Origin: Octopus sinensis
Taxonomy: Eukaryota
DNA length: 64,000 nt
Assembly: GCF_006345805.1 (NCBI RefSeq)
Contig: NC_043008.1
Span: forward strand, 33,728,001-33,792,000
Direction of reading: 5' to 3'
A program made the position numbers and the translations under genes. The notes below the pieces were generated by a model. The model searched no databases. It saw only the letters and a program-made list of their open reading frames with translations, and was not told the DNA's origin. Shown here piece by piece: positions 7,938 through 62,954 of this stretch (its first letter is position 1; each line of letters begins with the position of its first letter).

Positions 7938-7983
7938 ATGAATCGCATTTTCATCTTACTTTCTCTCCTGCAAATAGTTTATA
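7938..7983 (+). CDS. Host gene coding exon 1: signal peptide MNRIFILLSLLQIVY
   Basis: Acceptor ttgtttactttcag ends at 7934, ATG at 7938, consensus donor GTAAGT at 7984 (phase 1). Basic residue followed by a hydrophobic core. The upstream acceptor implies an unlocated 5'UTR exon. Confidence 0.7.
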
Positions 7984-8445
7984 GTAAGTATTCTAACTTA
8001 TAACTTCTTTCATGAATTCTTGAAATATTAATTTTCATCTCATCAAAAACATAGACATCGATTCATTTCTGTTTTACATAATGTTACATTCTTATATTTC
8101 AGTTGCATTATCATAATTGTGTGTGTGATGTGTGTTTGTGTGCATGTGTGTGTGCGTGTATGCATACACACATGCATATATGTGTGTGTGAGTTTGTGTG
8201 AAAATGAAACAAAATATAAATGAGTGTTTTACCTTTTACTCTTTTAAGTCATTGGACTGTGGCCATGTTGGGGCACTGTCAAACAAATCAACCAGAACAC
8301 ATACTTTTTTTTAAACCTGGTATTCATTCTATCAGCCTCTTTTGCTGAATCGCTAAGTCATGGTTATGTAAACAAACCAACACTAGTTGCCAAGCAGTGG
8401 TAGGGGACAAATACAAACACAAAAACAGATCCACAAATCAATATA

Positions 8446-8604
8446 CCATATTTTATAAGGAACCCTCGTGTATAAGGAACTCCCTAATTTTAGGGGCTTA
8501 AAATTTGGGAAAATGGTTTTGTGCTATCCATATATAAGAAACTCCCATATTTTTTAACCTAATTTTTGAAAACAAAAGGGTTCCTTATACATGTTATAAT
8601 AGGG
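8446..8604. mobile_element. Small Tc1/pogo-like MITE
   Basis: Imperfect inverted ends CCATATTTTATAAGG ... CCTTATACATGTTATAATAGGG, flanked by TA. Confidence 0.5.
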
Positions 8605-8610
8605 TATATA

Positions 8611-8812
8611 TGAGGTGGAGTGCTGAAAAGTCCTGGCTTTAAGGCTTTCCTGAAAAGCCTGGCTGGAGGCCCAAACTTAAAGGTCTTTTGCAGGGTTTAG
8701 AAAAACTGAAGGACCATTGCATGAAAGGGGAATACTTTGAATAAAATTTTAGTTAACTAATCCTCCGGTATTTTCTCTTACCCAAAGCCAGGAACTTTTC
8801 AGCACTCCCTCA
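8611..8812. mobile_element. Mariner-derived MITE
   Basis: TIRs TGAGGTGGAGTGCTGAAAAGTCCTGGC / GCCAGGAACTTTTCAGCACTCCCTCA. Confidence 0.75.
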
Positions 8813-59177: not shown

Positions 59178-61560
59178 TGTTGTGGAAGGATTCCAACCGC
59201 CGCTCAAGTAACTAAAAGGTCGACTGACTCATTCTAAAGTAAAGAACTGTGAACAATTGGCGGTTCACGATGAGAGTTTGATATAAAACGTTGAGTCTCG
59301 AGTAATAGCAGTGCATTGTCTATATACTACCCCGCCTACCTGCTTCGTTATATTATATACGCAATACAAGGATATAAAAGTGGGCACGAGTTGTTCAAAG
59401 TGTGCAGTTCATGTTTTTTTTGCTCTTTTTGGGCACAAAATCAAAAAGTACATCGTTTTAACATGGAAGACTTATTGGACCTCCGTGGTGCAGTTGCAAA
59501 AGTAACAGCAGCAACAACAACAGCAGCTGCAGGATCAACTACAACAGCAACAAAATCAAAACCAACAGTTGCTGGAATTAATGATGAAGAAGTCCGGAAA
59601 TACTTCAGGTTCGTATTCGTCAGACAGCGTAGCGAAGTCAATTGAAGAATTCAGCTATAAACCAGAAGACGGTACTACCTTTTCTGCATATGTTCTCAGA
59701 TATGAAAAAAATCGTCAAAGTGGAGTGTAAAAGTTGGTCCGACGAGAAAAATGTACGGCTACTTTTGAGAAACTTATCCCCTGCCGAACACAAAAAATAT
59801 AGTAATTATATTCTTCTAAAGAAGCCAGGTGAGATTTGTTTCGATGAAACAATATTTTATCGAATATTTTCAGTGAAAGAAGTTCCCTGTTCAATGCTCA
59901 CGGGGGAATGTTTAAACTTGGTCAAAAAAGATGATGAAGATTTCGTCACTTATGCCAGAGTGGTTAATAGATACTGGGAGAAATTCAAATTGAATGAGTT
60001 TACCCCAGACATGTTCAAGTCTTTAATTTTGGTTCAAGGGCTTACTGCAAACAAAGATGCAGGAATACGTTCCCGGGTATTAACAAAATTAGTACAGGAC
60101 CAAAATTTAACAGTAGCTGAAGAATGTCAGAGTATTATAAATCAACAATATGACAAATAAAAGTGAAGCAAAAGATTGCTCTCAGATACAGCCATTTCGA
60201 CCGGTAATGAATAAGAAACAAGACAAAACAATGTCAAAACGGAATCCATGTTATGTGTATAGTGGTCTACATCTTAAAAATAATTGTCCGTTTATAAAAT
60301 GCTTCGAGAGTAGTAAAATAGGCCATAAAAAGTTGCATTGTAGGACAGAACATAAAAAAGCGTTTCAACAGAAACAATCGGGTAAACGGATTATCGATGA
60401 TAAAAAATACAAACAAGCCTCAAAGAAAATTTCTGTATATAAAAATTAATTCCGCAAACGTAATTGGAAACAGGCAGAGATATTTCAATGATTAACACAG
60501 GTACATGGAGACCTAGATTAAATGAAACAATGTTTCTCAGAGGGGTGCATATTTTTAAGAGTGTCTGCCCCCGACGGGTCTGGTCGACGTCCATTTTTGT
60601 TAATGATTTGTCCTAAATATCTTATTTTCGGTAACAAAAATTCAGACTTTTCTACCCTCAAAGTAAAAGCCATACACCCTAATTATTTGGAATACATATT
60701 TCACATCATAGCTTCTCAAAGTGGGTGCTACCGCCTGTCGGTGGGTGTTGAGCCGGTCCAGGTGGCCGCTGTTGTTTAAGGGGGCTTGAGGTGGGGGCAG
60801 TAGAGAAAAAGAAGGCGTTAGGAGGAAGGCAGTGGATTTGGGGACGCTATGAATTAATCATATTATTATTATAGTATTATAAATTAGATAATATTATATT
60901 AATTATCAAATGATTCATAGTATATATAAATTGCTAAAATATATAATATTCCTTTATACATAAAAATAGGGGTGGGGCGCTGAGGGTATTATGTGGCTAT
61001 GAGGGGCCGGTGGACCCAAAAGTTTGAGAACCTCTGTTTTACATGTGACCACTCCGCCGTATCATCCTAGGTCAAATGGACAAGCGGAGTGTTTTGTTGA
61101 CACTTTCAAGAGGGCGTTTGAAAAGGCGAGCAATGAAATTATGACGATTTTGCATTCTAACGTCTAAGAGTGTACCGAGTAACATCTAATCCGAATACAT
61201 CGTAGGCAATGTCACCCGCAAAGTTGATGTTTGCTAGAAAGGTCAGATCTGTTTTTGATACGCTGATGCCCAATGAAAATAAGAAAGCCAATCAAAAATA
61301 CTTCAAAATTCTTCAAGTTAGGTGACATAGTTTTTTTTTTAATCTATAGATATGGTAGAGAAAGCTGGAAGGACGGTGTAACAATTAAATACATTGGAAG
61401 AATGATATTCCTGGTAAAAGGAAAAATGTTTAATACAAAAAAATATTAACCAGCTTAAAAGAAAGGTTCACAGAAAAAACAGCCACGAGAAATGAAATCC
61501 CTATGGAAGTATTATACGGCACGTTTGAGGTACCAACACCCAAATAATTTGAAACTACAC
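59178..61560 (+). mobile_element. Internally deleted, 3'-truncated Gypsy LTR retrotransposon (possible 5' LTR 59178-59368, gag, integrase remnant)
   Basis: gag-like RLLLRNLSPAEHKKYSNYIL..FKSLILVQGL..IRSRVLTKL; degenerate CCHC knuckles at 60250-60350; integrase TPPYHPRSNGQAECFVDTFKRA at ~61045. Confidence 0.8.
60707..61036. mobile_element. hAT MITE (same family as 20209-20488) nested in the Gypsy remnant
   Basis: CATAGCTTCTCAAAGTGGG ... AAAGTTTGAGAACCTCTG, near-perfect 8-bp TSD TTTCACAT/TTTTACAT. Confidence 0.85.
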
Positions 61561-62672
61561 GTTCTAGCACCAGAAAACAGAAAAGAACGGAAGCACTGGA
61601 ATTAGGTTGGAATTAGGAAGAATATCCAGCTGTAAAAACCATGCTGAACCTGAGATATCTGAGCAAACATCATCTCCTAATCTCTTGGATTCTGTCAAAC
61701 CACCCAGGCCATGTCAACATGGAAAACTGACATAAGATGTTGATGATGGTATATATACATACATGTATATTTATGATGCTGGTATATATACATATATGTA
61801 TGTGTGTGTGTGTGTGTGTGTGTGTGTGTGTGTGTGTGCATATAATTTATACACGCACATTCACACATGCATATGTATATATATGTATGTACATATCTAC
61901 CTACCTATGTATGTATATACATACATGCAAACATACAAACGAACAAACAAATAGTATACACAACAGAATTCATCACAATTTTTGTCTACCATTCACAAGA
62001 TATTGGTCAACACAAAACTATTGGAAAAGTAATTTATTCACCAACCCAAGATTTTGCAGAGGGAAATTGAACCTGGAACCACATGGATTTGAAGCAATCT
62101 TTTTAACAAACAGTAATGTCTTGTGAAATAACAGCTGTCCTTATTGTAACTGTTTTAGATTGATTAGATGGTAGTTGCTTTTTTTGGTTAACTCCATGCT
62201 TTTCAAGTGTTTCTTACCTTCTTAAGATGATACAGTGTGATTTGAGGAACATTTGGTTGCAATTATATGCTGATTCCTTGATTTGTCTCTTTTGCTCTCT
62301 GATAATTAGTTGCTAGGATCCTACAGTGTGGATTGGTGGTAAATTCAGTTACTTTCATACTGGATGGAGGTGTGGATTCAGTGTCTACTGTTCAGAAAGA
62401 CAGAATACCTCAGCCTCCCGAATCAGTCCAGATGATGTGTGAGGAGTGAGAAAGCAGCAAATTGGGTTGAGAAAGAATATTTGAGATGGCTCTCCTCCTA
62501 AATACAGTATGAAAGGTGATTAAAATGATTCATGGTGTTTGAATGAATTCAAATAATATTAAAGGTAATAAAAAAGCTACAAATTGTTGAAATGTTTGAC
62601 CATTAAAGAAGCAAAAATCAAACAAGCAAATTCTCTTTTTTAATGCTTTCCATTTTTCTCTTAACATTTCAG

Positions 62673-62739
62673 TAATTCTTTGCAGTGTTCTTATACCAAC
62701 AATAGTCCTGCTTTGTATGTTATGCATCATAGTTATCAG
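62673..62739 (+). CDS. Host gene transmembrane exon: (I)ILCSVLIPTIVLLCMLCIIVI
   Basis: catttttctcttaacatttcAG / GTATGT, 67 nt, phase 1-2. Encodes 22 consecutive uncharged, mostly hydrophobic residues. Confidence 0.8.
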
Positions 62740-62830
62740 GTATGTAATATAAAACTACATCTTACTACTGAGACTCTTTTAGAGTATCATTATTATTTTA
62801 ACTTTTTTTCTTTATTTTTACTGTACTAAG

Positions 62831-62954
62831 TCAGAGGATGAAGAGCAGTGCTCATCTCCCATTTTCAAGACATATAAGACTGGAAGGACGAAGGGAAATT
62901 GTATTAAAAGCACCCAAAGGTCAAGTAGTCTTAGAAAACCAGTTGGCTGATTGA
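62831..62954 (+). CDS. Host gene last coding exon: cytoplasmic tail (S)QRMKSSAHLPFSRHIRLEGRREIVLKAPKGQVVLENQLAD*
   Basis: Follows a 91-nt intron with a long T tract. The acceptor tactAAG gives phase 2 and a basic juxtamembrane segment. An alternative CAG 4 nt downstream would give RG*. Confidence 0.6.

Follow-up and report, generated by a model that had tools for sequence, protein, structure and literature searches.

Is there a real gene in the 64,000-nt stretch of Octopus sinensis DNA analysed here (contig NC_043008.1, positions 33,728,001 to 33,792,000 of the forward strand; called the window), and if so, what kind of protein does it encode? A first-pass annotation of the window had proposed a hidden 12-exon gene for a type I membrane protein with an extracellular PLAT-like domain on a mucin stalk, and could not name an ortholog. 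We found that the gene in the window is real. Its product is a type I membrane glycoprotein with a cleavable signal peptide, two to three short duplicated repeat exons, a beta-sandwich, a serine/threonine (S/T)-rich stalk and a single transmembrane (TM) helix, and its family is already in the databases, as uncharacterised, mis-modelled entries. On balance, we favour the joint reading that the window contains all but the 3' end of one gene of an Octopus-restricted tandem family, working by the mechanism proposed below.

Gene model and predicted product

The chain of 12 exons was reproduced base for base (Table 1). It comprises exactly 1008 nt and encodes 335 aa, with GT-AG at each junction and donors of the gtaWgt type, and the five peptides quoted in the first-pass annotation were all found on the + strand where it had placed them. 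Polypyrimidine-CAG acceptors and GTAAGT/GTATGT donors are present at the flanks. A scan of 7984-62672 for open phase-1/phase-1 AG..GT exons gave 49 candidates, among them all seven small exons needed for the chain. The small exons are all phase 1-1, so any subset of them can be included without a frame break.

Exons 1, 2, 4, 5, 6, 8, 9, 10 and 11 recur in predicted proteins of O. vulgaris, O. bimaculoides and O. sinensis with shared junctions, and each of exons 1-11 has a positional counterpart in a collinear locus of O. vulgaris. This locus, the gene DNA of CAI9731026.1 (OX597825.1:33,821,386-33,925,044), is called L001 here; L002 is a locus of O. sinensis and L003 is an O. vulgaris paralogue. 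Ten of the twelve exon calls were accurate. The remaining two are exon 12, treated below with the 3' end, and exon 7, which is in no relative's model and has the acceptor GG instead of AG in L001. The 39/39 nt identity of exon 7 to L001 is not significant alone, and its inclusion is unsupported.

The predicted N-terminus consists of MNR, a 12-residue hydrophobic core and then small residues. The 335-aa product has 9 N-glycan sequons, 8 cysteines and one 23-residue hydrophobic segment, with a single Kyte-Doolittle TM peak at residues 268-292 (19-residue averaging window). K/R residues follow the TM segment both in the tail encoded at 62831-62954 and in the tail of the relatives, as in type I topology. 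The signal peptide, the three sequon-bearing repeats, the S/T-rich stalk and the one TM peak were all recovered as proposed. The stalk (exons 8-10) is about 56 residues long with about 40% Ser/Thr, few prolines and no tandem repeat array of the proline/threonine/serine kind, and it is better called S/T-rich than mucin-like.

Several exons show a history of local duplication. Flanking introns are ~80% identical between the tandem units that carry exons 2-4, and the exons themselves are less similar; exon 9 and its downstream intron are a duplicate of exon 10 and its intron. The donor of exon 2 reads TT, not GT, in L001, which fits the skipping of this exon in the O. vulgaris model. Exon 3 has both splice sites intact in both loci and is used in no public protein model. 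Between exon 4 and its L001 counterpart there are 3 substitutions and one 6-nt indel that keeps the frame. Exon 8 is set apart from L001 by a 24-nt in-frame indel, its segment with flanks being only ~83% identical.

In L001 the sole changes next to the identical exons 2 and 7 hit splice dinucleotides (28792/28793, GT->TT; 64436/64437, AG->GG). These changes could be copy-specific exon loss or chance.

The gene begins upstream of 7938. The upstream exon (2347-2448) encodes 34 aa with which CAI9731026.1 begins (100% match), and the O. vulgaris model splices it to the acceptor at 7935. It has 0/102 nt differences from L001 against a background of 4.35%, and the 234-nt block around it (window 2247-2480, L001 9901-10134) has 1/234 mismatch; we regard this block as a candidate promoter/5' untranslated region (UTR) under constraint. 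The O. bimaculoides relatives begin at the MNC/MNR methionine, and we therefore place the start codon at 7938 and assign the exon at 2347-2448 to the 5' UTR.

Table 1. Features located in the window (P numbers denote protein models of the relatives)
Feature	Position	Strand	Content	Remarks
Upstream exon	2347..2448	+	5' UTR or alternative in-frame start (MHLCIPF...GSGDD)	Donor GTAATT
Exon 1	7938..7983	+	Start codon and signal peptide MNRIFILLSLLQIVY(S)	Acceptor 3 nt upstream, at 7935; starts P0001, P0005 and P0009, internal in P0003 and P0011
Tandem duplicated units	20489..25306	+	Units of ~1.4 kb, each with one of exons 2-4	
Exon 2	20803..20874	+	Repeat unit 1, phase 1-1, SVDWNKSYKSAKDLQIQNNTTSK, 3 sequons	72/72 nt identical to L001; type used by P0001, P0005, P0006, P0011
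Exon 3	22194..22268	+	Repeat unit 2, phase 1-1	75/75 nt identical to L001; homology to exons 2/4 and conservation
Exon 4	24868..24924	+	Repeat unit 3, phase 1-1	Used in CAI9731026.1
Exon 5	29503..29759	+	First 85 residues of the PLAT-like domain, strands 1-6	
Exon 6	36788..36881	+	Last 31 residues of the domain, strands 7-8	Conserved NLNTS sequon, two invariant Cys
Exon 7	45029..45067	+	NALNVSSKVTQN, 39 nt	Open frame and good splice sites in the window only
Exon 8	46252..46347	+	S/T-rich stalk, part 1	In P0001, P0002, P0003, P0006, P0007, P0009
Exon 9	52171..52212	+	Stalk, part 2	In P0002, P0003
Exon 10	58307..58345	+	Stalk, part 3	In P0002, P0003, P0006
Exon 11	62673..62739	+	TM segment IILCSVLIPTIVLLCMLCIIVI	Ends in phase 2; nearly identical in P0003, P0006, P0007, P0008
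Exon 12 of the first-pass annotation	62831..62954	+	41-aa tail	AAG acceptor; probably outside the conserved transcript
Window-specific block	62767..64000	.	Insertion or replacement	From 27 nt into the post-TM intron to the window end
Degraded LINE-type retrotransposons	17384-19744 and 52322-54721	+		Introns 1 and 9
Further transposon-derived open reading frames	59642-60160, 27619-28212, 5325-5756	+	Three frames	
Element of ~100 nt	24526-24625, 25690-25789, 26635-26734		Contains GGAATTTGAACTCAGAAC	Three copies, 68-82% identical
Dense microsatellites	982-1132, 3883-4163, 14880-15134, 36581-36727, 37427-37783, 45740-46207, others		(TATA)n, (TAA)n, (ACAT)n, (CA)n	

The domain encoded by exons 5 and 6

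Exons 5 and 6 together encode a domain of ~117 residues, and the WxLES|IxLMNLNTS junction between them is common to all relatives. Judging from structure modelling, this domain very likely has a PLAT/LH2 fold and is too diverged to pass Pfam. AlphaFold2 was supplied with a six-row alignment whose first row was the domain of XP_014780931.1 from O. bimaculoides, 71% identical to that of the window. The resulting model is an eight-strand sandwich (strands 2-12, 21-28, 31-39, 51-56, 64-67, 82-91, 97-101 and 111-113) with a predicted local distance difference test score (pLDDT) of 67.7 and a predicted template modelling score (pTM) of 0.65; exon 5 alone gave an uninformative model (pLDDT 55, spurious helix). 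When the model was compared with the PDB by Foldseek, the top 50 matches were all PLAT-bearing proteins: pancreatic lipases and related proteins, lipoprotein lipase (LPL), 5-, 8R-, 11R-, 12- and 15-lipoxygenases, and Rab6IP1. The Foldseek probability was 0.72-1.00 (46/50 at 1.00), and the query TM-score was mostly 0.5-0.65 with a maximum of 0.65.

By sequence alone the resemblance to PLAT is marginal. The Pfam PLAT profile aligned with the window domain in register over profile positions 6-96 of 117, but with E = 0.057 the alignment scored 14.6 bits where 23 are required. The PLAT-like domain of the first-pass annotation is borne out by the structural matches and falls short by the Pfam threshold. 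A profile of the nine domain copies of the family was also compared by hhalign with a PLAT alignment of five sequences, namely 5-lipoxygenase (5-LOX), 15-LOX, pancreatic lipase, LPL and polycystin-1. Checked against the PDB, this alignment recovers those very proteins at 1e-42 to 1e-13. The comparison gave P = E = 0.0012 over 84 collinear in-register columns, in which WRITFHISNSFGAGTSNYITVQL is paired with a PLAT stretch, SRPSFDF with AVDSYDV, and AWTLESIYL with DDWYLKYITL. Three methods gave the same motif order: W/Y-x-I/V-T, the (A/S)GT loop, G-x-x-x-S-F-D-F and W-x-L-E-S-I.

In an alignment of five copies, four cysteines are invariant (two in a CxxxC loop, two on the final pair of strands), together with the NLNTS sequon. 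With nine copies, three cysteines are invariant and the fourth is lost in one copy. The four cysteines and the sequon would fit a disulfide-bonded extracellular domain, which had been considered probable from the window alone; the cysteine pattern agrees with this in the five copies and less completely in the nine.

It is quite improbable that the domain is another beta-sandwich, Ig-like or C2-like, with a PLAT resemblance produced by AlphaFold from a shallow alignment: the automatic UniProt name "Ig-like domain-containing protein" on the O. bimaculoides relatives (A0A0L8GJ50, GI40, GHW4), the pLDDT of only 67.7 and the marginal sequence statistics speak for it, but no Ig or C2 Pfam family was found at E < 10 in any of the 9 domain copies, no Ig or C2 protein is among the top 50 structural matches, which leaves the UniProt label unsupported, and the motifs listed above line up in one and the same order by three independent methods.

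Family members and their annotation

An exhaustive phmmer search with exon 5 alone against 1.84 billion representative proteins found three Octopus proteins (E = 1.4e-72, 1.7e-33 and 1.9e-16). A bacterial match of 2582 aa (P0004, E = 6.7e-10) was judged spurious, consisting of three short stretches in a repeat protein. A full-length profile search added four further Octopus proteins, and cluster look-ups supplied names and two more isoforms. A word-index protein search returned nothing with either the window domain or the 5-copy profile, and homologues outside Octopus were not detectable in the phmmer and profile searches.

The relatives in O. vulgaris are CAI9731026.1 (A0AA36BAV1, hypothetical protein, OX597825.1:33.83-33.92 Mb), CAI9731027.1 / CAI9731028.1 (hypothetical protein / "development 2-like") and CAI9731029.1 (hypothetical protein). 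In O. bimaculoides they are XP_014780931.1 (uncharacterized LOC106876757) and XP_014780935.1 / XP_014780936.1 (uncharacterized LOC106876762, which carries the UniProt name mentioned above), and in O. sinensis XP_036363740.1 (uncharacterized LOC118765596). Pfam assigns no family to any of them, and a search of the literature for their accessions, or for PLAT with octopus, yielded nothing relevant. The earlier statement that no ortholog could be named is not supported, since the collinear CAI9731026.1 of O. vulgaris and further Octopus relatives exist. Likewise, the gene is hidden only in part: public models exist, but they are fragmentary, fused or without the domain exon.

At least 6 loci, distributed over three species, belong to the family, with a domain identity of 66-83% and shared exon 5|6 junctions; for the relatives other than CAI9731026.1 the identity is 66-71%. 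The relatives also share the signal peptide and the stalk, TM and tail exon types. CAI9731026 to CAI9731029 are consecutive accessions on one chromosome, and L003 lies ~0.3 Mb from L001. CAI9731026.1 and the window have in common the upstream exon, the signal peptide and the TM exon, exons 4, 6 and 8-10 in full, and exon 5 in its 3' part. Unlike the window model, it leaves out exons 2, 3 and 7 as well as the first half of the domain, and it has a 96-aa tail with ENDxY repeats, past the reach of the window.

Octopus annotations of this family are systematically fragmentary, with split, fused or truncated genes. The CAI9731027/28 models fuse a LINE frame with two neighbouring genes, one of the TM type and one for a secreted three-domain protein. 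The CAI9731029 and LOC118765596 models are without domain exons, and the O. sinensis model is TM plus tail only. In L003 (OX597825.1), an intact exon-5-type open reading frame (ORF) with an in-frame 4-codon deletion is located at 7912-8160, 2 kb upstream of the start of CAI9731029.1; this model starts with an unrelated N-terminus, so that half of the domain, the first, goes unannotated. Iso-Seq and RNA-seq data went into the O. vulgaris annotation together with aligned proteins and ab initio gene models (PMC10700109).

A second gene is called in L002 1-22976 (O. sinensis CM016870.1:33697902-33720877), over the whole locus and on the strand of LOC118765596. Its 591-aa product is not among the family matches.

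LOC106876762 of O. bimaculoides is a compact gene of 12.8 kb. Its product has the domain three times in tandem, together with a signal peptide and one repeat of the exon-2 type, and lacks a TM segment; 7.7 kb downstream of the gene there is a signal exon belonging to another copy. The description of the domain as a lone PLAT holds for the membrane-anchored members, but not for such secreted paralogues with three tandem copies. It could be argued that the secreted tandem-domain proteins are the main products of the family, acting for instance as lipid- or membrane-binding effectors in mucus, saliva or haemolymph, and that the TM copies are tethered variants and not signalling receptors. The 12.8-kb gene and a similar gene in the O. 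vulgaris cluster would agree with this, as would the established action of extracellular lipase PLAT modules at lipid surfaces. However, the TM paralogues keep a long conserved tyrosine-rich tail, which is unnecessary for a mere tether, and we hold this explanation to be unlikely.

Comparison with the collinear O. vulgaris locus and evolution

The window and L001 are collinear over 58% of the window length, with 4.35% non-coding mismatches. Non-coding divergence between O. vulgaris and O. sinensis is 1.3%, and the distance between the window and L001 is 3-4 times that value. It means that the L001 counterpart is an orthologue in another species or a recent paralogue.

Divergence from L001 is uneven among the exons. 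Exons 2 and 3 are identical over 147 nt, and exons 2, 3 and 7 together show 0/186 differences where 4.35% is expected (P = 2.6e-4). Exon 6 differs at 18/94 nt (19%, P = 1e-7) and exon 8 at 13.5% (P = 3e-4). The segments around exons 6 and 8 (window 36627-36940 and 46136-46937) are 83-90% identical to L001 and the rest of the locus ~95%, and synonymous sites of the two exons are equally raised, with a proportion of synonymous differences (pS) of 0.15-0.19 against 0.0435 in introns. Clean positive selection as the sole cause was rejected because the synonymous sites and flanks have diverged too. Exon 8 of the window is closer to CAI9731027 than to its positional counterpart CAI9731026, so the window copy is a mosaic. 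Patchy gene conversion among tandem paralogues is the better reading of the divergence in exons 6 and 8.

Over the whole coding sequence the ratio of non-synonymous to synonymous rates (dN/dS) is 1.8 against L001, which is not significant (Fisher P = 0.17), and among five domain copies it is 0.7-1.9, about 1. The five copies differ by 99 minimal substitutions, distributed 35/30/34 over the codon positions, without any stop (P = 0.002), and every exon indel is in frame. O. bimaculoides and O. vulgaris split ~34 Mya (PMC10700109), and the frame of the family has been kept since. This pattern may fit a constrained core with a freely or adaptively changing surface.

The window copy might also be a decaying or unexpressed paralogue, its open frame being a remnant of recent duplication. 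The dN/dS values just given would be in line with decay, as would the change of the NET sequon to NEA in the window's domain, the insertion next to the TM exon, and the fact that no public protein corresponds exactly to the window copy. But eleven exons are open with intact splice sites and in-frame indels, the promoter/5' exon block and exons 2-3 are conserved above background, and the stop-free frame has lasted ~34 My in the family. Decay is therefore doubtful.

The 3' end and the cytoplasmic tail

The first-pass annotation had closed the gene with a 41-aa tail encoded by exon 12. This tail falls outside the related loci: the alignments to L001, L002 and L003 all end at 62766, and exon 12 has no tblastn counterpart in any of the three. 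The closure of its frame has no evidential weight, because a stop would sooner or later follow whichever acceptor was used in this phase.

The relatives use a tyrosine-rich tail exon. In four of them (P0003, P0006, P0007, P0008) the TM exon ends in phase 2 and is joined to an exon that begins SYKRFKSY.../RHRYKKSKSN..., and in L001 and L002 this exon lies ~2.3 kb downstream of the TM exon (L001 92247), which would be beyond base 64000 here. Tail sequences of the relatives include RHRYKKSKSN...ENEGYY and SYKRFKSYLISEEMTEK. The paralogue tail is conserved over ~150 residues (...LPEEIE.Q.NNTLKQQAA.ILPPNNAHSIRNDPCMME...) and is rich in tyrosines with an acidic surrounding, for example in YSNV, YENG and YIDM/V (YxN and YxxM/V motifs). 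The tail exon of L001, at 92247-92990, is open for ~248 aa with ~12 tandem repeats of the VENDVYSIG/ENDLY type, most of which are spliced out in the public model. The 41-aa tail is most likely an artefact of the window edge, and the true cytoplasmic tail would be encoded past base 64000 and would resemble the paralogue tail.

If exon 12 were real for this copy, the inserted block would give a short-tailed, signalling-dead surface protein, serving as a decoy or in pure adhesion. The frame does close at 62954 with a basic stop-transfer stretch (SQRMK), and the block starts only 27 nt past the donor and could capture splicing. However, the AAG acceptor is weak and conserved in no related locus, and four relatives use the conserved tail exon instead, which makes a functional exon 12 improbable.

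Proposed mechanism and relation to known proteins

PLAT/LH2 is the C-terminal domain of pancreatic and lipoprotein lipases and the N-terminal domain of lipoxygenases, and it also occurs in polycystin-1, Rab6IP1 and LOXHD1, in general as an accessory module. PLAT domains bind lipid or membrane surfaces or a partner protein, in many cases with dependence on Ca2+. Secretory-pathway PLAT without an attached enzyme is known from the single-domain plant PLAT1/PLAT-plant-stress proteins, which have a signal peptide, and from the extracellular LH2 modules of apicomplexan LCCL/LAP proteins. These belong to other kingdoms and have no TM-plus-tyrosine tail, and phmmer detected no sequence relationship to them.

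The octopus domain is similar to PLAT/LH2 (PF01477) in its predicted eight-strand sandwich of ~115 residues, and lipase PLAT is likewise extracellular. The tandem arrays of the secreted octopus paralogues recall the LOXHD1 repeats. Unlike known PLAT domains, it carries a conserved site for N-glycosylation and putatively two disulfides, it is attached to no catalytic or channel module, and it stands on a stalk outside a single TM helix in an Octopus-restricted family. The TM-plus-tail region of P0007, P0008 and P0011 gave 12.6-16.9 bits with SCIMP (PF15050), below the cut-off of 27. The sub-threshold alignments are full-length (16-17 bits at E about 0.01), and the paralogue tails contain YxN motifs of the Grb2-binding type, but SCIMP has almost no ectodomain; the resemblance is one of composition and layout only.

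By analogy with lipases and lipoxygenases, the extracellular PLAT-like domain may bind either another protein or a ligand presented on lipids or membranes. Its occupancy would be reported inside the cell by phosphorylation of the tail tyrosines and recruitment of SH2 adaptors (YxN, YxxM), and the secreted three-domain paralogues would be soluble binders for the same ligand class. Since diversification is fast (dN/dS about 1, mosaic structure, copy-number change), recognition of variable targets, for example in immune or chemosensory recognition, seems to fit better than a housekeeping role. Taken to its full extent, this would be an octopus-evolved system of PLAT-fold receptors with phosphotyrosine tails and secreted partners, directed to lipids or membrane surfaces in immune or chemotactile functions, and its tandem cluster would diversify by duplication, phase-1 exon shuffling and patchy gene conversion. 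This full picture is offered tentatively, and as a whole it is unlikely.

Several points weigh against the joint reading given at the beginning. All junctions depend on splice consensus and on automated models of other species, which disagree mutually. The AlphaFold2 model has only moderate confidence and represents the domain of an O. bimaculoides paralogue, not the window's own. The other 8 of the 9 domain copies have no Pfam PLAT listing even at E < 10, the family profiles had no match among PDB sequences, and the same hhalign comparison that gave P = E = 0.0012 had an HHsuite probability of only 19%. Both the dN/dS of 0.7-1.9 and the 35/30/34 distribution would also be expected under relaxed constraint, and among-codon rate heterogeneity is weak (P = 0.09). 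The tail is outside the window, and its link to the gene might have been broken by the insertion that follows the TM exon. Finally, ligand, lipid binding and tyrosine signalling are proposed purely by analogy.

If the joint reading is true, a free-standing, glycosylated, disulfide-bonded PLAT-fold ectodomain on a single-pass receptor, with secreted tandem paralogues, would put the fold to a new architectural use and would be a concrete case of cephalopods building lineage-specific surface-recognition genes. Family-level analyses built on the current octopus annotations would miss the domain. The fold is a known one, and what is new is the architecture around it, in a tandem family that evolves fast and is confined to one lineage. 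This is of interest for the biology of cephalopods and the evolution of PLAT domains, but it is not categorically new.

Transposons, repeats and composition

The window is AT-rich (~37% G+C) and full of microsatellites, and an Rfam scan of it gave nothing. The microsatellites often directly adjoin exons, and through them long open frames arise that are spurious (YIYIYI, HTYIHTYI and the like). Both long interspersed nuclear element (LINE)-type retrotransposons have broken RVT_1 reverse-transcriptase ORFs (Pfam E = 3e-25, 4e-7 and 3e-10). The one in intron 1 is absent from L001, yet its ORF MEVLGHTKKKIKDWFDENDKEIQELLARKRATWRGEP is the N-terminus of the CAI9731027/28 models. Among the three further transposon-derived ORFs, one is gag-like (DUF7083, just sub-threshold), one has a C-terminus of the zf-RVT type, and one is unassigned but similar to accessory ORFs of retroelements. 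The element of ~100 nt looks like a tRNA-derived short interspersed nuclear element.

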